A DNA stretch of 64,000 nucleotides from Epithemia pelagica (lineage: Eukaryota > Protista > Bacillariophyta): assembly GCA_946965045.2 (NCBI GenBank), contig OX337229.1, positions 558,001 to 622,000 on the forward strand, read 5' to 3'. Below, piece after piece: positions 14,901-41,508 of this stretch. The notes beneath the pieces are model-generated. The model did not search any database. It had not been told where the DNA came from and worked only from the letters and a program-made list of their open reading frames with translations. The first letter of the stretch is position 1. Every line of letters begins with the position of its first letter. The position numbers were made by a program, and so were the translations under genes.

Positions 14901-15380
14901 CTAGGGCAGCCCCTGTCGACTGGCACGAAGCGATCGCAGTTTGGGACGTCCTCCCGTTGCCGGTGTAGTTGTAGTCATTGTAGTGCTGCTAGACGCTTGG
15001 GGGGTCGTGGACGCCGGAAACGATGTCGGCAGATTGGCATTGGAGGATGACTCCAGCGAGGAGGATGGTTCGGTAGACGTGTGCTGATCGGTTTTCCACG
15101 AATCTTGAAAGACATAGAGAATATCCGTGGTGGTACTTTCATCACTCCACATGACACTGGCCCCCAAATCGGCACGCAAATAGGATCGATTGGCCTGTTC
15201 TTCCGCCGAGGCATCGCAAAAGGAATCGCAATCATCGTCATCGTCGTCATCGCTAAAATCATCCAAGGAGCCCTCCTCCAATGACTCTTCATCGGCTGCT
15301 TCATCATGTTGAACGGTACTTTCATCGTCATCGGAACATCGCGAGGCTGTATTGAGTGTTTGTTTGGAATGCCACGATCG

Positions 15381-15412
<32 letters not shown>

Positions 15413-15908
15413 GCTGTGTCGCAGTAGTAGAAGTCGTACGACTATTGAGACTGGTGGTTCGAAAGGGACCCTGATGACTGTCGTGCCGATCCGAATCCAA
15501 ACAATCCCGTTCTTGTTGCAACCACTCATCCGGGGTACTGGCAGTCTCACCCCCTCGCAGTCGCTTCTTTTTCTTTTGCTGTTGTTGGTGTGCCCACGAG
15601 GCTGATGAGGCCGAGGCCAAGGACGAGACACCATTGCTATAGGTTCGTGGCAAGGCGGCGCCGGCCAAAAAGGTGGTGGGGGTATCGACCAATTTGGTCC
15701 CCAAACTCAATCGTCGTGGTGTTTTGGGCTGGGCATAGTCTTGAGAATCTTCTTCGGGAAATAACAAATGAGCGGCCCATGCAGCCGTATCAGTGGGAGA
15801 CGAAAAGGACGACCCGGCCAAACTGGAATTGTCCAAGGACGATCGCCGTCGTTCCACCACACGAGGACGATGGAAACTAATTTCAATCGTTTGTTCGAGA
15901 GGATGCAT
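14901..15908 (-). CDS. Low-complexity hypothetical protein (poly-Q, acidic block)
   Basis: Part of the 410-aa ORF; plausible ATG at MHPLEQ. Composition and microsatellite-encoded tracts match neighbouring genes. Confidence 0.7.
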
Positions 15909-16979
15909 ATTGAAACTCTTGTAGATGTGTAACTGTGTGTGTATCTGTGTGTGTCTCTGTGTTTGGTTGGTTGTATGGAGCTCTTTCGAGAGGCGAAAGA
16001 GGAACAAGAGGTTGGCAGGATTTTGACGGGTCTGCTTCGATCCGTATTCACTCGTTGTGTCGTTTTCTGTGGGACAAGCCGTCACAAGAACAACAACAGC
16101 AATCAGAACGGCAGGGAGCTCTGCAACGGTCAAGGTAGCTTTGGACTACTACACTCTATAGAAAGCAGGACACACAACAATCAAGACTGCCTGTGCATGC
16201 ACTGTTCGAATCGTCGCTTTTGTTAGAGAATATCAGCCGGCAGAGAAAGTAGATGCTCGTAGTCGTAGGGCTCGACTTTTTGTCACTTGCATCCTGTTTA
16301 TTTTCCAGTGCCCTGCTGTCCTTTGTTTGTCTCGTGTGTCTGCCACAAAGAGAGAGAGGTTCCGACCGTTGCCCGACAAAGGTCGTTTGTCGTCTTTTTT
16401 TCTGTTGGGGGTCGTTCCATTGTTGTCCGACATGCTACTCTTTCCCATACAGTTTGGGTCTTTCTCAATATAATTCTGAGCATCCCCCAGCACAATAATT
16501 CTGTACAGATTTCCGAAGGGCTCAATGACTCCGGACATAACGGAGTTGCTCAACGGATCTGATTCTTGTGAGGGAATAAAGAGTGGGCATAGGAAACCAA
16601 CAGTCATTTGCGTGAAGGCTTAATTGATGTTAAGTGTGTTTCACTACGAGCTCCATCAATCGATATGTTGGCGCTCAGTTGCCCGTCCTTCACCTCGGTG
16701 AAACTTCCGGCCCAACGAGATTCACTTCACAATACATTTTCCTAAAGTAAAATGAATTGCCCCACATCGACAACATATTTTCTCGTAAGGTTAGTCTACC
16801 TCGCACTCCTACCGATGAACCTTTCACCATGACGTGGAGGCGCTTCCCCTTTCTGTGCGAGAAGTAAAAGTACTAGGACTACGAGTAAATCAAACTGTAC
16901 AAACGGCTTCCTAATGATAAGCCTATATTAGGTTGCTACCATCACTGCTGCTTGTTGTCCTCGTTGTTATCGGGGATTG

Positions 16980-31894: not shown

Positions 31895-33133
31895 GCTGTA
31901 ATTGATAGCAGCGTGTGAGTACTTGGTATTCTGGGTGGTAAGATTTGCGGATCTGTGCTCGACGAGCTTCTGTCAGTGTTCAAAATTGTGTCGTGAGACG
32001 GGCCAAACAATTTTTTGTGAGCAGTGGAGGCGCTTTAGATTTTGGTAGGACTGGTTGCTCGACCAAAAACTATTACTGGCACGAATGACCTTAATACTGG
32101 AATGGAAGGACATACCGGCATACCATCTTACCAGTTGCTCGTAGAAGAAAGATTGTCCGCATAGTAACTACCTACAATGGTGGCTCCTAGAAGAAGATGG
32201 TCCGCATAGGAACTAGAAGAAAATGGTCCCATAGATCCTATACGGTTTCGAATTCTAGGATTATTAGCCGGCAACAGTGTACTATAGTTTTTTGGCTCGC
32301 GACTCTCGACTCTCGAGCATCGAGCTCGAGGAGAGATGGTCACGTTAACTGTACTACCCATGCATCATAAATCATAATTCATCTACCTACCGGTAGGTAA
32401 TACACAAAATCGATTCTCCCTGGACGAGAACAGGAGGGCTTGGTTGTGTCATTGTGGTCAGTGCACATACACAATCCTTCATGCGGTCTTCTTGTTCACT
32501 TTTGTCACCTGCCTGCTGCCTGCACATTGTGCAACTCCCACTCTACGATTCTTGTTCTTACTTTCTCGTTTTTTGTCAAGAGGGTTTCCAGCTTGTTTTT
32601 TTTGTCAAGGGGTTTCCAGTAATGTTCCAGTTCCACACAGATAAAGGATGATGTGAAACGTAGCGCAGTCTAGGAGGATATCTACCTTTTCTCTCCGTAT
32701 TCGTACTCCCTAGTTTGTCGCCGGTGTGTCCCGGGATGCACAGAACGTTATGATTTCACCGATTGATCGGTAAGCGGTAAGGTGTCTCCCTACCTGATGC
32801 GAACCCCCTCACAAAACGAGAACTCATCACTGACTCGCAAAGACAAAGACTCGTACTATACGAGTAGATTGAAACAGTGTATTATGAGTAAGCGATAAGT
32901 GAGAAATCGCTTGGGCATGGGTATGTGGTACGAGTACAAGTATGCCCTAATGAATACGATTACGAGTACATAAGAAGCAACACTACCTATTTCATCTCCC
33001 GATCAGTTTCCTTAGTCAAGGGTGGAACGCTCTCGTACAAGTACTCGTATATCTCAGATCAAGTGAGATCTTTACGATAGGGTGTCGATCATTTTTCACT
33101 TCCCATCGTACCCAAGAAATTAACCCTCCGTAT

Positions 33134-33165
33134 CGGTGACCACCTCTAAATCGTCTGCCAGTCGT
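33134..33165 (+). repeat. Left inverted repeat
   Basis: CGGTGACCACCTCTAAATCGTCTG-C-CAGTCGT: 24/24 match, 1 mismatch, then 7/7 match to the reverse complement of 39889-39920. Confidence 0.92.
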
Positions 33166-33356
33166 TCACCGAATTCTTCTCTGACCTGGTTTTTTTCCCT
33201 TTTGTCATACAAATTTTTTGGTCAATTTCCTATTCTTCACGCCGGCATGGTATCTCCTTCGTCGGCATTTGCGCCTCGCCCGACTCGGAAACTGTCCAAC
33301 CGCCTTTCTCCAACTCTTTCAAATATGGCATCCAGATCCTTTCGATCAACTATAAG

Positions 33357-34640
33357 ATGACCATGACAACTGTTCCAATTGGAACAGCTCAAGATGCGCA
33401 AGCTGATATTGATAATGCCATCCATCGTCAGTTCAACTGGCAAGCCGAACTTTATTTCACAGACCTTGAAAACTTTGACAATCAAGCAATAGATCTGTTT
33501 CAATTCACTGATAAAAACCACTACCATTTTTGACGACAATCATCCAAATCAAAAAGTACTGAAGAACTGCCACATTTGGTTATCTTTGACAGAAAGAAAT
33601 ATCCTCCGAATGATGACGGCATTAAGAGACTGTGCACAGCTCTAAAGATTGAGGGTATCAAATCAGGAACTAACCTTGTCTATCGCAGCCAAGCGCATGT
33701 TCTCTCTTGTTTCCGTTGTAGGAAACATGGTCCCCGACGTTCGAAAGTCATCCCATCTACCAACATCCCCGACCAACCAAATGGAAGCCCGATGGACAAC
33801 AATGATACGGCACAGCCAGACAACATTCTATCAGACGAAACTTTCGACAATGACGGTGTCCGTCTTGGTATACGAGATACCACCGTGATCGGAGCATGAA
33901 CCGTTGTGGTGGGAAATCATCTGTTCGGGGAACTTCGACAATGCGACCTGTTCATGCTGAAGAAACATGCAAAGTTGCACTGCGTCTTGGTGTGAAAGAG
34001 GGTCCTGACGGGTACATATACCTCAAACAAGGGTGTGGACATCGATTTCATTCTTTCCACCCCAAACCACAAAAAGGTGATCTGTGTTTTGCTAAACGCC
34101 ACATTTCCGACTCCACATACAAGCTCATTACCAGTGGTGCTAAAGTTTCTGTGGGCAATGGCTCTCTAAGATGCATTGTCTTAGAAAATCAAAGTGAGCT
34201 GATATCCCGTGGATCAATACAAAGAATTCGAATGGAGCCTGACTTCCTAACAAACAATGAGCAACGTGAGTCCACTGCTTCCCAGATGGTGCACTGGTTA
34301 CAAAAGCATGCAGCAGATCCAAATGTAGGATTGTGTTATTGCTTTCTCTCTTGCCGTCAAAGCAGATATCCCGGCTACCACCGACATCCCAAAGGAAGGC
34401 CTGGACAAACTGGAAGAATTCCTCTTGACAAAATAGAGGAAAACATGGAATATGTGGATACTCTCGAGAATACCTATAGAACAGCTCAAAGTGTAGAACA
34501 ATCACAAGAGCTCCCTTTGGACAACAATGCACTCAATCAGACATTGAACATGGCTCGAGAAATTCATAATGATTCATTGATTGATCTCAAAAGTCATAGA
34601 ATTCTCCTGGGGGCAGGGTGGGTTGATGCTCAAGCCTGTT
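33357..34640 (+). pseudogene. Degenerate Mutator-like transposase 5' half (FAR1/WRKY-GCM1-like zinc domain), truncated before the DDE core
   Basis: One in-frame TGA (~33531) and one frameshift (33896-33899). LSCFRCRKHG ... TCKVALRLG...YIYLKQGCGHRFHSFHP, then RILLGAGW immediately before the 97-bp array. Family call is from remembered motif pattern only. Confidence 0.5.
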
Positions 34641-35498
34641 CATTTGTTGGGGTTGACAGTCGGCACCTTGTTTGGGCCATTGGAGGGATCGTTCTTTGGA
34701 CTGGTCGTCGGCAAACTGAGTAGAGCACAAGATGGTTCATTTGTTGGGGTTGACAGTCGGCACCTTGTTTGGGCCATTGGAGGGATCATTCTTTGGACTG
34801 GTCGTTGGCAAACTGAGTGGAGCACGAGATGGTTCATTTGTTGGGGTTATCAGTCGGCACCTTGTTTGGGCCATTGGAGGGATCATTCTTTGGACTGGTC
34901 GTCGGCAAACTGAGTGGAGCACAATATGGTTCATTTGTTGAGGTTGACAGTCGGCACCTTGTTTGGGCCATTGGAGGGATCATTCTTTGGACTGGTCGTC
35001 GGCAAACTGTGTGGAGCACAATATGGTTCATTTGTTGAGGTTGACAGTCGGCACCTTGTTTGGGCCATTGGAGGGATCATTCTTTGGACTGGTCGTCGGC
35101 AAACTGAGTGGAGCACAATATGGTTCATTTGTTGAGGTTGACATTCGGCACCTTGTTTGGGAAATTGGAGGGATCATTCTTTGGACTGGTCGTCGGCAAA
35201 CTGAGTGGAGCACAAGATGGTTCATTTGTTGAGGTTGACAGTCGGCACCTTGTTTGGGCCATTGGAGGGATCGTTCTTTGGACTGGTCGTCGGCAAACTG
35301 AGTGGAGCACAATATGGTTCGTTTGTTGAGGTTGACAGTCGGCACCTTGTTTGGGCCATTGGAGGGATCGTTCTTTGGACTGGTCGTCGGGAAACTGAGT
35401 GGAGCACAAGATGGTTCATTTGTGGGGGTTGACAGTCGGCACCTTGTTTGGGCCATTGGAGGGATCGTTCTTTGGACTGGTCATGGGCAAGCTGAGTT
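34634..35498. repeat. Tandem array, 97-bp unit, about 8.9 copies
   Basis: Unit starts at 34731, 34828, 34925, 35022, 35119, 35216, 35313 and 35410. The unit is seven 12-nt blocks plus one 13-nt block, each beginning GG. Confidence 0.98.
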
Positions 35499-35548
35499 TT
35501 GTCCATTGGAGTCTGATGACAAGGCAATTGGACATTTTCATTATTTTA

Positions 35549-37800
35549 TTAGTTGAGTGGTTCTTGAATAGAATCCGATAAATATTTGGTTCTGGTAGAG
35601 TGTTCGAATTTTTCATCAATACGGGCATGTTTGATTCCTTTTGATATCACAGCCTCATGCTTCATGTAAATTTCATGTCCCAATTTGAATGTCGCATCAT
35701 AGGGCCATCGTACAACTAGAGGTCCAACGGTGTAAACAGACATGCCATTTTTCTTCCATAACACAACACCACTCTTTGTGGGCTCGTACACAATTTGATC
35801 GGCCCATACAAGATCAGTGAATCTTTGTGCTTCTTTGTGTTGGGCTTGAAATATGTTGCACACAATACTCTCTGCATTTCTTCGGGAACAAAATTTTCCT
35901 GACACATCTTCAACGGCCTTTGTGAAAGAATCAAGCAGTTGTTTTGTCCCTTGTTCCCCTTTCCTCAAACCATATTCACGGCTCAAGAATGAAAACCACA
36001 TGATTCATGAGTACCTTGTATTTCGAAAGAATACCACAACGGGACACACCCAACAATGGACATTGCATTTATCAGATGATTAGTTCCCACGACACCACAT
36101 GAAGGCAAACTTCCCTTCAATCCCTTCATAGTCATGTTGTATAAGTTTGCCCTTGTTTTCTTGTTCGTTGGTGCATCGTCATATCCGAATGATTGAATGC
36201 AGACAAATACCATATGCCGTATCTGTTCCTTAAACTGCTCGAAGGATGGTAGATTTGTTTCAGAACTTGTTGTAAATCGTGTCCCAGGGATTGGTTTCTT
36301 TGAATTTTTATACGAACCATATATCTCGTGAACTCTTTCCAATAGGTTGTATCCAAATTCCAATCCGGTCTGCTTCAGCACAGGTCGCTGTAATACTTCA
36401 ATAAGCGCAGCGGTAGCAAAGAACGTTGTGAAGGAACACAATGCAAAAGACCGGAAGATGCATATGACCTCCACAAAATCAAGATGGAATTGTTTGATCA
36501 TTCGCAAACTGTAGTGAATAATGGGAGACACATAGATGGACGCCTCTAAGTGACATGGATACAGACTGTAACCAATTCCGCACCAAGCACCATCACTCTT
36601 GGTCGTCGTTGCAAATGTTAATGGGCCAGTGTTTTTTCTTGCATCGTCAATAGATTCATACCTGTGCAATAGGAATCGGAGAGACGGACCAATGTCTTCG
36701 TTCTCCCTGCGCTCTGCATCCAATATGGACTTCCTTGTAGCGGCAATTACTGAAATTCTCAAAGAACGCACACCACATGGAACAACCTTGGAAAGAATCA
36801 CAACCTCTGGAAAATTAGGATCATTGAGATCATCATCGTGAAAGCCACATTGTCCAACTTCTGCTGAATTTACGTCTGTTGCAGCTATCCGAATGTATTC
36901 AATTACATTCTCCTTATCGATTCGCTTTGCATACCTTTCCAGTCGCTGGGTCGAACGGCCATGCCAAACATGAGGACAGTTTTGTTTGATCATTTTTGTC
37001 ATTGTACAAAGTACCTTGACCATTATAGGGTCCATTGTTCCATCCAACATCGAAGGACGTGACAGTCTGTGATTGGCCTTATCACGAGAAAAGGCACCAC
37101 CACCACCAAACCCGGCATCTTGCCAGAGATGTTGTCGTGGCATATGCGTTGATCTGTCACTAACCATCCCTTCTTTCTGCAGAAGTAACAGAGAAGAAAG
37201 ATCCTGCCATGGTAGACCAATCTCCTCTATGATCCGTGTTTCAATAAATTGGAAGTCGGCTGAATTGGGTGGGAAAGAATCTTGCTTTGGAAAAACTGAA
37301 TGGACGGGGATGATACATTCTTCTGGGAACTTGAAATCAGGTGCATTTGCAGTGAAATGCCCATGCGGAATGTGAAGTGATTTGGCCACTGTGCAGACTG
37401 TGACTTCATCCAATGGTTGGTAATTAGAAACAATGGAACTCATGTAGTCCAATCTGGCATGGAAAAAAGGACCTTCGGACATCATCTGCTTTTGTAGCGA
37501 TCTGGGAACGTCCTTCCACTTTTTTGATGGAATTTCAAAAAGGAATGGAAGAGCCATTTTATACTTCACTGATGCTTTCTGATCCATCTTGTGCTTCTTG
37601 GAAACGTGCTTAGGCTGACGTTCTGCATCAATAATCTCACGCGATGTGGAAGTACTTATGTCTCGTGGAACCGACTGGGTCTCGACAGGAACCTTATCAA
37701 CACTCGACCAACTTGTGTCTCCATCAAGTAGATCAGCAATAACACGGAGAAGACCAGATACCTTCCGACAACGACCCTCATCAACGAGTAATCGATCCAT
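35549..37800 (-). CDS. Cargo ORF (605 aa + 150 aa joined by one frameshift near 35990-36004); uncharacterised, with HxDxxN...RxS and HhH-like motifs
   Basis: Two overlapping ORF-track entries. One extra T in the GGTTTTC run fuses them (GTHESCGFSFLSREYGL). Motifs: GFHDDDLND, LRISVIAATRKS, SLPSCGVVGTNHLI, NAESIVCNIF. Confidence 0.7.
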
Positions 37801-37804
37801 TTCG

Positions 37805-39492
37805 GAGAGTCACTGTTCGGACCCAATATACTGTCCCAATGGACTAGTATAGGGTCCTTTGAGATGAGGATCGAGCCAGGTCAAGCAACCAATCACCAGA
37901 AATCAACAATCAACCTCAGTCACTGGTGCCCACTGGTCCAGATGGCAGCTGCAACCCAAAAGAGGACGAGAAAATTCTTCAGCCGAGAGTCACTATTCGG
38001 ACCCAATATACTGTCCCAATAGACTAGTATAGGGTCCTTTGAGATGAGGATCAAGCCAGGTCAAGCAACCAATCACCAGAAATCAACAATCAACCTCAGT
38101 CACTGGTGCCCACTGGTCCAGATGGCAGCTGCAACCCAAAAGAGGACGAGAAAATTTTTCAGCCGAGAGTCACTATTCGGACCCAATATACTGTCCCAAT
38201 AGACTAGTATAGGGTCCTTTGAGATGAGGATCAAGCCAGGTCAAGCAACCAATCACCAGAAATCAACAATCAACCTCAGTCACTGGTGCCCACTGGTCCA
38301 GATGGCAGCTGCAACCCAAAAGAGGACGAGAAAATTTTTCAGCCGAGAGTCACTGTTCGGACCCAATATACTGTCCCAATAGACTAGTATAGGGTCCTTT
38401 GAGATGAGGATCAAGCCAGGTCAAGCAACCAATCACCAGAAATCAACAATCAACCTCAGTCAATGGTGCCCACTGGTCCAGATGGCAGCTGTAACCCAAA
38501 AGAGGACGAGAAAATTTTTCAGCCGAGAGTCACTGTTCGGACCCAATATACTGTCCCAATAGACTAGTATAGGGTCCTTTGAGATGAGGATCAAGCCAGG
38601 TCAAGCAACCAATCACCAGAAATCAACAATCAACCTCAGTCAATGGTGCCCACTGGTCCAGATGGCAGCTGCAACCCAAAAGAGGACGAGAAAATTTTTC
38701 AGCCGAGAGTCACTATTCGGACCCAATATACTGTCCCAATAGACTAGTATAGGGTCCTTTGAGATGAGGATCAAGCCAGGTCAAGCAACCAATCACCAGA
38801 AATGAACAATCAACCTCAGTCAATGGTGCCCACTGGTCCAGATGGCAGCTGTAACCCAAAAGAGGACGAGAAAATTTTTCAGCCGAGAGTCACTGTTCGG
38901 ACCCAATATACTGTCCCAATAGACTAGTATAGGGTCCTTTGAGATGAGGATCAAGCCAGGTCAAGCAACCAATCACCAGAAATCAACAATCAACCTCAGT
39001 CAATGGTGCCCACTGGTCCAGATGGCAGCTGTAACCCAAAAGAGGACGAGAAAATTTTTCAGCCAAGAGTCACTGTTCGGACCCAATATACTGTCCCAAT
39101 AGACTAGTAAAGGGTCTTTTGAGATGAGGATCAAGCCAGGTCAAGCAACCAATCACCAGAAATGAACAATCAACCTCAGTCAATGGTGCCCACTGGTCCA
39201 GATGGCAGCTGCAACCCAAAAGAGGACGAGAAAATTTTTCAGCCGAGAATCACTGTTCGGACCCAATATACTGTCCCAATAGACTAGTATAGGGTCCTTT
39301 GAGATGAGGATCAAGCCAGATCAAGCAACCAATCACCAGAAATGAACAATCAACCTCAGTCAATGGTGCCCACTGGTCCAGATGGCAGCTGCAACCCAAA
39401 AGAGGACAAGAAAATTTTTCAGCCGAGAATCACTGTTCGGACCCAATATACTGTCCCAATAGACTAGTATAGAGTCCTTTGAGACAAGGATC
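37805..39492. repeat. Tandem array, 180-bp unit, about 9.4 copies
   Basis: The sequence recurs exactly every three 60-nt lines with a few variant sites. There are stops in all six frames of the unit. Confidence 0.98.
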
Positions 39493-39888
39493 TGACAGAA
39501 TCAAGCAAAAAGCAACAACCAAATGATCCTTCGAATGAGTTGCTTGTTGAAGCCAACACAAATTCAAAGTCAATGAAAAAAAGTTGCTGGAAAGAGATTG
39601 CCCTTGCAAGTAGAGCAATGAGTGCCTTTGAGCGTTATGCAGAGCTATTCAAATATTCGATCATTCCAAAAGACTTATCTTACAAGACTGTTTTAGCAAC
39701 AAGATCGACAAAACTGTCCATTGTCCATTGTTATGCTGCACTGCACCCATTCAATTTTTGGTGGGTGGGAAGTTTCGAGTGGCAGTTGGTGGTGAGGAAA
39801 AATGGGGACGCCAGCCAAGCCAACACTCGATGAAATTTTTCCTCTTGTGGGAGAGGAAATTTGGTGCGAAAGACAGACTTGGGGAAGG

Positions 39889-39920
39889 ACGACTGTCAGA
39901 CGATTTAGAGGTGGTCACCG
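39889..39920 (-). repeat. Right inverted repeat
   Basis: ACGACTG-T-CAGACGATTTAGAGGTGGTCACCG, the reverse complement of 33134-33165 with one mismatch. Confidence 0.92.
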
Positions 39921-41508
39921 GAGCCAATCCAAATGATTTTATTGTTCACCAGACCGCTTGAAATAAGTCGTTATCCGACAACGAGAAAACTACCTATCAC
40001 CAATCACCACGTATCCCCGTCTTAAAGAATAGGAGTAGCTTTCACCCGGTACTGGCAGGGAAAAGAAACGTCATGCAATCTTGGACTGGACCTACCACCT
40101 TCCATTATTCGGGTTTGGAATCTCCAACATGCCCCTATCATTTCTTAAATAATGTCATTGGAAAGTATAGCATTGTCTCGAAGAATAATCAATCCAATAG
40201 CAGAAATATCAGAAATCCAGTTCTTCTACCCGGCGTCCACTTCCACGCACCCTTGGGAGAAGTTGACTCGTCTGGACCATCCTAAGAGCCCAAGATAGTT
40301 GATTACTCTAGAACTACTACTTCTACACGACAGGTCGTGAGTGGCTGACATAATACTTTATGAATTCTTACAAAAAAGATCAGCTCGACAGCAAACCAGT
40401 CCACACAAGTTCTGGAGGGAAAGTTGCCCCTGAAGCTGATCGAATTGGTTTGCTCACGAGCAGGACTACAAATGGAACGATACTGCCGGTTCCCCTGTTG
40501 ACATTGGATGTTCTGCTGTCTCATGGTATGGCAACACACAAGGCAACCGCTGTTGACTCGTCACCAGTTGTTGTGCGTTGTCGTCTTTCATTGGCCAGCC
40601 GAAAAGAATCGAAAATGAATTTTTCAACAGACAAGACCTTTGTCCGAACGAGCTCAAAGCATGGAGAAGAAAGTCTTCGGAAGGTTGCCGGGGTGATGAG
40701 TTTCTTTGATCACTGAATGAAAAGTATCTCATTGACGATCGAAAGGGGAGGAACAGATTTGACGAACTCAGTGGCAATTCCACAAGTCCCACTGACTCGG
40801 AGTTGTTGCATCTTCTCGTCCTCGGTCAGACGGGGCGCCGCCGAGTTCTGCACTATGCACTATGGCGATTTGTGTCAAGGGCGACAGGCGATTGTTGGGT
40901 GTTCCGTATTGTGACGACATGAAAGTCCACCATACATCAGCATAAAATGTTGGTAGTTCCTGGTTCCCGGGGACAAAAGATGCGAGCATCGAGCATCGAC
41001 CTCGACCGGGTCGCGGAGGGGATACAAGATATTTTTTGGTCGCGGTTGTATGAGGAGGACAAAGGGGGGGTTAAATAATGTCTGCGAATAAAACTTTCGC
41101 GCTTCCACATCGTAGAAGTACGAGTACAGGGCTTTGTTTCACATTTTCAAGATGTTCAATGGTCGATCCATCATACAACATTATTTCAACGGCAGGACAA
41201 GAACAAGAACGTTTGTCTGTACCAAGAAGATTCGCATGCCGATGTCGCAAGTCGCAACATGCAACTTCCAACGTCTCCGAACTGTCCGATATCCAAAGCT
41301 GTTCGACGCGACTGGGATCCTTTGTACGAGTATCCGTAGACATATTATGATGACATACGAGAGATGCCATAGCGCGAATAAGCACAGTGGAATCTCTCTT
41401 GCACTTTGGAGACGTGGTCCAGTTCATTCATGTTGTTGTGGTCGTGTTCCTTCTGTTGGTGAAAATCGAAGAGTGGAGTTTTAATCAGTCATCATAAAAG
41501 GTTTTACA

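Follow-up and report, generated by a model that had tools for sequence, protein, structure and literature searches.

A Mutator-like transposon of the diatom Epithemia pelagica encodes a protein with predicted TET/JBP-like and AADT-like domains

A stretch of 64,000 nucleotides from the diatom Epithemia pelagica (assembly GCA_946965045.2, contig OX337229.1, positions 558,001 to 622,000), hereafter the window, holds a copy of a Mutator-like (MULE) DNA transposon that carries, besides its transposase remnant, a gene of ~750 aa, ORF2 (35549..37800, minus strand). The ORF2 protein is predicted to join a double-stranded beta-helix domain, nearest to those of TET/JBP dioxygenases, to an HhH-type domain that appears to be a remote homologue of phage amino-acid:DNA transferases (AADTs). 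From these patterns of sequence and predicted fold we propose, with a probability of about 0.6, that the protein processes oxidised 5-methylpyrimidines and so counters silencing. The TET-like domain would bind a flipped 5-methylpyrimidine in DNA, most likely 5-methylcytosine (5mC), and oxidise its methyl group, after which the fused AADT-like domain would engage the oxidised base. Where family members have kept the E-N-x-x-C-K motif intact, its Cys would attack C6 so that the oxidised group at C5 is replaced or removed; the transposon clade has an eroded motif, and there the AADT-like domain may be a DNA-binding or base-flipping module only. The net effect would be that the cytosine methylation targeting the element is erased or masked, a self-encoded means of anti-silencing.

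ORF2 lies in two frames, an open reading frame (ORF) of 605 aa at 35983-37800 and another of 150 aa at 35549-36001. The initial annotation had taken them for one frameshifted gene, and comparison with the protein P0001, the locus L001 and contigs from public sequencing runs bore this out, placing a 1-nt deletion at 35989..35990 (minus strand). A search of 5.8 billion proteins gave three relatives of ORF2 only, all from one ENA assembly: P0001 (750 aa, 98% identical, uninterrupted across the junction), P0002 (814 aa, 60% identical) and P0003, a truncated copy. At the junction P0001 reads CGFQFLS and the window CGFHS-stop, indicating that one base is missing from the window. Contigs from three public sequencing runs of this organism differ from the window by nine substitutions and have one extra T behind 35989, which restores the frame; the break is therefore private to the window copy or an assembly error there. 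The motif strings from which an enzyme had been suspected were all present, GFHDDDLND (H321, D323, N326), LRISVIAATRKS (R348, S350) and SLPSCGVVGTNHLI in the 605-aa ORF and NAESIVCNIF in the 150-aa ORF.

In an exhaustive HMMER search through 1.84 billion cluster representatives, 164 proteins passed E<=0.001, 75 passed 1e-10 and 19 passed 1e-30; every named member is annotated 'hypothetical protein'. No Pfam domain was found in any of 30 near-full-length members, and a threshold relaxed to E<=10 gave no relevant family either, whether for ORF2 whole or in pieces, for 30 full-length relatives or for 10 isolated N- and C-domains. A PHROGs search found no match, nor did searches of the PDB sequences that started from the single protein or from a profile. 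The ORF2 family is large, unannotated and apparently eukaryotic. Residue conservation was counted in an hmmalign alignment of ~150 family representatives, with numbering as in ORF2.

AlphaFold2 modelling with a 147-sequence alignment gave a predicted local distance difference test score (pLDDT) of 87.2 and a predicted TM score (pTM) of 0.83; for the N-domain alone the values were 87.8 and 0.89. The model divides the protein into four parts, all on the minus strand: a disordered N-terminus, the beta-helix domain (residues ~80-369; 36694..37563), an all-alpha, probably HhH-type domain, which spans the frameshift (residues ~370-660; 35822..36693), and a small six-stranded beta domain (residues ~661-710; 35672..35821; strands by DSSP, pLDDT >90). 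In the structural comparison of the beta-helix domain all 50 matches listed were 2-oxoglutarate (2OG) oxygenases, and the top four were TET/JBP structures (NgTET1 5cg8, TET2 9hxv, CcTet 7vpn and CMD1 7cy4). The domain is thus modelled as a beta-helix of the nucleic-acid oxygenase type with TET/JBP as its nearest relatives. An AlkB-type reading was rejected, as AlkB-like structures score below the TET family and the Arg spacing of AlkB differs from that of ORF2.

TET2 has the motif H1382-x-D1384-x-x-N1387; its 2OG-binding strand carries R1896 and S1898, and the signature of the superfamily is Arg-x5-aromatic. The HxD iron-binding motif of TET/JBP dioxygenases is present throughout the ORF2 family. 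H321-x-D323-x-x-N326 (36823..36840, minus strand) matches the TET2 motif, with N326 at the place of N1387, and its conservation (H321 in 83/83, D323 in 82/83 and N326 in 81/82 sequences) lifts the likeness above the coincidence that the initial annotation had feared. In TET2, N1387 is one of the residues contacting 5mC, and NgTET1 and JBP1 have Asp there (PMC11804724). As the invariant N326 occupies this place, 5mC would be the most likely substrate. R348 (74/82) stands where the 2OG-binding Arg is expected, in the pattern R348-x-small with an aromatic residue six positions on (Y/F at 354) in 55/82 sequences. Its strand, R348-S358 (36727..36759, minus strand), has the family form R-x-small-x-I-x-aromatic-x-R-K-S, in which R356 is kept in 76/81 and S358 in 65/81; the aromatic residue is Ala in the window copy and in P0002. 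Among the residues for which conservation had been predicted, H321, D323, N326 and R348 were kept, as were E644 and C648 of the C-domain; S350 was not, being Ser in 42/82 and a small residue (S/G/A/T) in 72/82. Elsewhere in the domain G230 (65/65), P249 (69/69) and H146 (48/48; 37363..37365, minus strand), the last in an invariant 'PH[YG][QH]' motif, do not vary.

For the C-domain the closest comparison is PaMx11 gp46, in which the metal and the O4 of thymine are bound by Glu243 and Thr244, the nucleophile proposed to attack C6 is Cys247, W146 of the 'FGPW' helix clamps the base, and Asp24, Lys261, Asp262 and Glu265 line the pocket of the leaving phosphate (PMC11472151). The structural matches listed for this domain belonged to the HhH superfamily throughout with gp46 first, none of them reaching E<=0.001 in Foldseek against the PDB. 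Profile alignments were carried out with hhalign. A 30-sequence family alignment gave one alignment to gp46, which placed E644 on E243, residue 645 on T244, C648 on C247, residue 649 on K248 and D663 on D262. A 98-sequence C-domain profile aligned to 120 PF18724 sequences over 114 columns with a P of 2.2e-4 and a score of 36.3, and put G569..H575 on G144..K150 of gp46, the FGPW hairpin. In the controls, P was 0.49 for the N-domain profile, and the scores were 13.5 for the reversed target and at most 20.1 in 40 column shuffles. The consensus strings are alike as well (x-E-N-x-x-C-K..R-F-x-D-L in the family, V-E-T-I-L-C-K..L-F-K-D-I in gp46) and, by eye and beyond the hhalign alignment, the family string P-C-H-[LM]-D-P resembles V-D-L-D-P of gp46.

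These correspondences fall on well conserved positions, all on the minus strand. The HhH-like hairpin LPSCGVVGTNH (564-575), taken with G584..P587.W589 (36034..36111), aligns to F143-G-P-W146..K150 of gp46. Within SLPSCGVVGTNHLI, G569 is kept in 75/102 and H575 in 88/103 sequences; just downstream lies a stronger motif formed by G584 (99/105), P587 (104/105) and W589 (90/105). E644-S-I-V-C648 (35858..35872; E-N-x-x-C-K in the family) aligns to E243-T-I-L-C247-K, with E644 in 86/93, N645 in 83/93, and C648 and K649 each in 87/93. D663 (35813..35815; 84/87) falls on D262 of the leaving-group pocket. The ExxhC motif was the best-supported part of the initial annotation, since profile-profile alignment sets E644 and C648 on the catalytic Glu243 and Cys247. 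The C-domain is, as judged by these alignments, probably a remote homologue of AADT (formerly aGPT-Pplase), and it looks like a base-modifying transferase and not a base-removing glycosylase. Both functions had been envisaged for the protein; the likeness to a modifying transferase stood and the glycosylase did not, and the dioxygenase activity is unproven because of the missing distal His. The family differs from the queuosine-salvage glycosylase DUF2419/QNG1 and from the HhH-GPD DNA glycosylases (AGOG, OGG1, AlkA, EndoIII) in having the AADT pattern of Glu, Cys and Asp. There was no sign of the HhH-GPD Lys/Asp pattern in the ORF2 family, no separate search having been aimed at it.

Several results weigh against a catalytic, demethylating ORF2 protein. 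The canonical distal iron-binding His is missing from the expected strand in every member; positions 327-347 have no conserved His or acidic residue, and position 335 is V/I/G/T in the family alignment. D323 and R348 are separated by 25 residues, compared with roughly 50 or more in canonical enzymes, which leaves one strand rather than several, so that the topology of the beta-helix is atypical and a dioxygenase activity only putative. Both caveats had been raised at the outset for the window copy, and the absence of the His extends to the whole family. H146, upstream, is a candidate for a substitute, relocated third metal ligand. Pfam Tet_JBP (PF12851) did not match any of 10 N-domains at E<=10, aGPT-Pplase (PF18724) had no match even at E<=10, and Foldseek against the PDB gave nothing at E<=0.001 for either model. 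The anticipated beta-helix fold is borne out, and the HhH fold suggested, by the make-up of the structural match lists and not by any single match at that threshold. In the transposon clade the C-domain motifs are eroded: P0001 has E-S-I-V-C-N and P-C-H-L-E-A, P0002 has E-N-I-V-S-N (Ser for Cys) and P-C-H-L-H-S, and the 'HLDP' Asp is missing from both. The window copy keeps the Glu and the Cys of E-x-x-x-C, the following Lys being gone there and in P0002. No P-loop or kinase domain was found in ORF2, the element or 30 full-length relatives, although phage AADTs depend on a 5-hmU DNA kinase for their phosphorylated substrate, and none of the listed public runs holding ORF2 is on record as RNA.

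Further searches added little to these. An N-domain profile search of the 5.8 billion proteins returned only P0003 and no annotated intermediates. Foldseek against BFVD gave sub-threshold rows only, some of them named JBP1/TET oxygenase or 3-methyladenine glycosylase; the ESM Atlas gave no usable match by features and, by shape, TM<0.3 for both models. None of the structural matches covered the small beta domain at residues ~661-710, which might, for example, read DNA or chromatin. H417 of 'PCHLDP' was considered as the missing distal His and rejected; its motif resembles the DLDP of gp46 and lies inside the range of the C-domain structural match.

The loss of the distal His throughout the family and the erosion of the Cys, Lys and Asp motif in P0001 and P0002 are also what would be seen if ORF2 were a non-catalytic helper, its domains serving as scaffolds that bind DNA or modified bases and, for example, guide the transposase to the tandem arrays. 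ORF2 is flanked by two such conserved arrays, and purifying selection does not require catalysis. Maize MURB and Arabidopsis VANC are likewise accessory factors, and we know of no enzymatic activity of either. Against this stands the conservation among ~80 sequences of 20-30% identity, in which H321, D323, N326 and H146 do not vary and R348 and R356 are ~90% conserved. Invariance at such low identity is the pattern of an active site and not of a scaffold. We therefore consider a helper without catalysis unlikely, although it retains some weight.

The kinship of the C-domain opens another route, thymine hypermodification, in which the TET/JBP-like domain would convert thymine to 5-hydroxymethyluracil (5hmU) and the AADT-like domain, together with a kinase acting in trans, would build a bulky adduct that marks or shields the transposon DNA. 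Those relatives of the C-domain that have been characterised all act on derivatives of 5-hydroxymethyl-dU and are linked genetically to T-dioxygenases in phages, and the leaving-group pocket residues (D663 and the 'HLDP' Asp) are conserved in the wider family. However, the protein and the element are without a kinase, the AADT motifs are eroded in the transposon clade, and N326 is the 5mC-specific state of TET2, where JBP1 and NgTET1 have Asp (PMC11804724). Hypermodification of thymine is thus distinctly unlikely here, and action on 5mC followed by processing of the oxidised base is preferred.

A more specific form of the preferred mechanism is improbable in our estimate, namely that members of the family are 'oxidise-then-cleave' DNA demethylases in one polypeptide. 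Such an enzyme would oxidise 5mC with its TET-like domain; the conserved Cys of the fused domain would then add to C6, and the oxidised one-carbon group would leave by dehydroxymethylation, deformylation or decarboxylation, so that cytosine is regained with no excision of the base. To our knowledge, the catalyst of a C-C bond-cleavage route of demethylation has not been identified; if true, this scheme would supply an enzyme for it, carried by a transposon as an anti-silencing weapon.

The base composition of the element was compared with that of its surroundings. The observed-to-expected CpG ratio is 0.57-0.66 inside the three element copies versus 0.87-0.96 in the flanks; within the window it is 0.48-0.66 only inside the element and 0.8-1.08 elsewhere. 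TpG/CpA is raised, the pattern is the same in L001 and L002, and 13/28 substitutions between the window copy and L001 lie in a CpG context. Such CpG decay within the element is what would be expected if it were a target of methylation. In Phaeodactylum, another diatom, 5mC occurs in transposable elements only (PMC12344493).

The transposon copy occupies 33126..39925 (minus strand), ~6.8 kb, and is 97% identical to L001:7707-16456 on another contig of the same assembly, where a longer copy with the transposase core is found. Window 39920-34638 and 34637-33124 align to L001:7707-13164 and 15005-16456 at 96-99% identity, and the flanks are unalignable. The full-length element is 8.7 kb; L001 13187-15004, the transposase core, has no counterpart in the window copy. 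The terminal inverted repeats (TIRs) were defined by comparing the ends of three copies (window, L001 and L002, the last being the element of P0002), across which they measure 32-45 nt. In the window they are 32-nt arms, 97% complementary, at 33134..33165 on the transposase side and 39889..39920 on the ORF2 side. On the transposase side the terminus of the other copies reaches ~8 nt beyond the 32-nt arm (CTCCGTAT), and on the ORF2 side 5 nt of the outer terminus (TGTAT), kept in L001 and L002, have been lost in the window copy. No target-site duplication was seen, there being no matching 8-11-mers around any of the three copies, a small sample. The same GG dinucleotide, in element orientation, borders both ends in each copy (window 33126/39925; L001 7699/16454; L002 9300/16254).

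In L001 the transposase is intact; it matches PF10551 MULE at 4.6e-15 and a ZSWIM RNaseH-like family at 1.2e-10, and a CxC..CxH string of the SWIM zinc-finger type was spotted in it by eye; PF04434 SWIM matched only the L002 counterpart, below the cutoff. In the window the transposase remnant (33357..34723, plus strand) aligns to L001 15005-16456, with 76 indel columns against L001, and has lost the catalytic MULE core, the remaining N-terminal part being split over three ORFs. As ORF2 is on the minus strand and the remnant on the plus strand, the two genes converge. The element is Mutator-like, with TIRs and, in L001, a MULE DDE transposase. ORF2 as cargo of a TIR element was thereby confirmed, in this superfamily and not in the KDZ transposons to which it had been likened. 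The window copy is dead and non-autonomous, since its transposase core is deleted and its ORF2 is broken.

Two tandem arrays flank ORF2, one of 97 bp with 8.9 copies (34638..35497) between ORF2 and the transposase and one of 180 bp with 9.4 copies (37805..39492) between the TIR and the start of ORF2. The layout of L002 is identical: TIR, 182-bp array, ORF2, 97-bp array, convergent MULE transposase, TIR. Its array of 97-bp period lies at the same position (L002:12499-12919) with homologous units (score 57 versus a null maximum of 22), and the 97-bp array is an ancestral component of the element. The similarity of the 182-bp unit to the 180-bp unit is marginal. The core of the 97-bp array common to both subfamilies, whose ORF2 genes differ at dS>1, is approximately CCAAACAAG..GCCGACTGTCA..CCCAACAAA. 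Retention of period and core between the subfamilies suggests that the array is functional, for instance as a set of binding sites, and not junk.

Between ORF2 and the P0002 gene the ratio of nonsynonymous to synonymous divergence (dN/dS) is ~0.2 in every domain; with dS at ~1.2, near saturation, this ratio is only rough. Together with the layout and arrays shared across subfamilies, it indicates that ORF2 is an old, selected part of the element. ORF2 is an integral component and no recent random cargo. These results bear on whether ORF2 could be a captured host gene, a fragment in the style of a Pack-MULE, or a chance resemblance in which the TET and HhH likeness reflects nothing but common folds. 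The gene pair and the arrays have been kept between subfamilies at dS>1, the 50/50 structural matches listed belong to one superfamily, and the profile alignment lands on the catalytic residues of gp46 with a score far above the shuffles. Capture or chance is very improbable on these grounds and is disfavoured.

Outside this clade the linkage to transposons is less plain. The expectation that homologues would sit in TIR elements held for L001 and L002; no TIRs were found in the three further loci scanned (L003-L005). Around six further members a large convergent ORF recurs, and these neighbours may be very divergent transposases. Only the L007 neighbour is weakly MULE-like, and a transposon linkage for the family at large is therefore unproven. 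The convergent downstream ORFs, all on the minus strand, are L004:5013-7679, L005:4185-8093, L007:6235-9633 and L009:2631-5716. Those of L004 and L005 are homologous to each other (E 4e-26) and without a Pfam match; that of L007 has a weak match of the MULE-type RNaseH-like kind (E 0.0028).

Two-gene Mutator elements are familiar from maize MuDR (mudrA/mudrB) and from Arabidopsis VANDAL, whose VANC is an anti-silencing factor. VANC causes methylation loss at the element that encodes it, whose tandem repeats contain the motifs it binds, and in the present element two tandem arrays flank ORF2. The diatom element shares with MuDR and VANDAL the Mutator-type body and a second, convergent accessory gene; it differs in that MURB and VANC have no enzyme-like fold whereas ORF2 has two. 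VANDAL is mentioned, and transposon-borne TET/JBP genes are described, in a study of fungal elements, where KDZ (Kyakuja-Dileera-Zisupton) and other DNA transposons encode TET/JBP proteins (PMC12730594). Those elements are likewise cut-and-paste transposons with their own TET/JBP-type gene, presumed to act against methylation silencing (PMC12730594). The ORF2 element differs from them in host lineage (a diatom), in superfamily (Mutator-like), in a far more divergent TET-like domain and in the fusion to a second enzyme-like domain.

Set beside TET/JBP dioxygenases, ORF2 has the double-stranded beta-helix, the HxD followed, after three positions, by a residue that contacts the base (Asn here and in TET2), the Arg-x-small strand and, in most family members, Arg-x5-aromatic. 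It differs in the absent distal His, in having one strand's worth of residues between HxD and Arg, in lacking a PF12851 match and any Cys-rich or CXXC module, and in its fusion to an AADT-like domain. In phages, thymidine hypermodification clusters combine TET/JBP-type T-dioxygenases with kinases and AADTs (PMC13229309, PMC8989533). Compared with the phage AADT PaMx11 gp46 (PUGT, 8z2m, PF18724), the ORF2 domain has ~10% identity and no Pfam match, is joined to its partner in one polypeptide encoded by a eukaryotic transposon, where phages have a gene cluster, has no associated 5-hmU kinase and carries a motif that is partly degenerate in the transposon clade.

In the literature searched, TET/JBP genes carried by transposons are reported from fungal elements alone (PMC12730594), and the partnership of a TET/JBP-type enzyme with an AADT only for phage gene clusters (PMC13229309, PMC8989533). 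ORF2 puts both modules, as predicted, into one protein that is a selected component of a diatom Mutator-like element. If active, it would be a new route by which a eukaryotic mobile element rewrites DNA marks; its TET-like active site would be atypical in having no distal His, and the protein would be a compact candidate tool for editing 5-methylpyrimidines. The abstract of a 2013 survey by Iyer et al. reportedly places such systems in a 'stramenopile alga', and the novelty of the ORF2 fusion may overlap with it to some extent.

A few further observations were made on the copies and their surroundings. In the sister subfamily, the disordered ORF2 N-terminus contains a 29-aa unit in 4-6 copies, encoded by an in-frame 87-bp tandem repeat at L002:10058-10406; the truncated P0003 has more repeats. 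At L001:4077-6278 (minus strand), 1.4 kb from the intact Mutator-like copy, lies a 733-aa ORF with a weak match to the piggyBac-type DDE_Tnp_1_7, suggesting that transposons are clustered in that region. In the biofilm metagenome runs X4 and X5, low-depth contigs hold short pieces of ORF2 (window 36984-37682) with 2-3 differences per ~225 bp, which indicates that the organism or a close relative was present in the biofilm samples.

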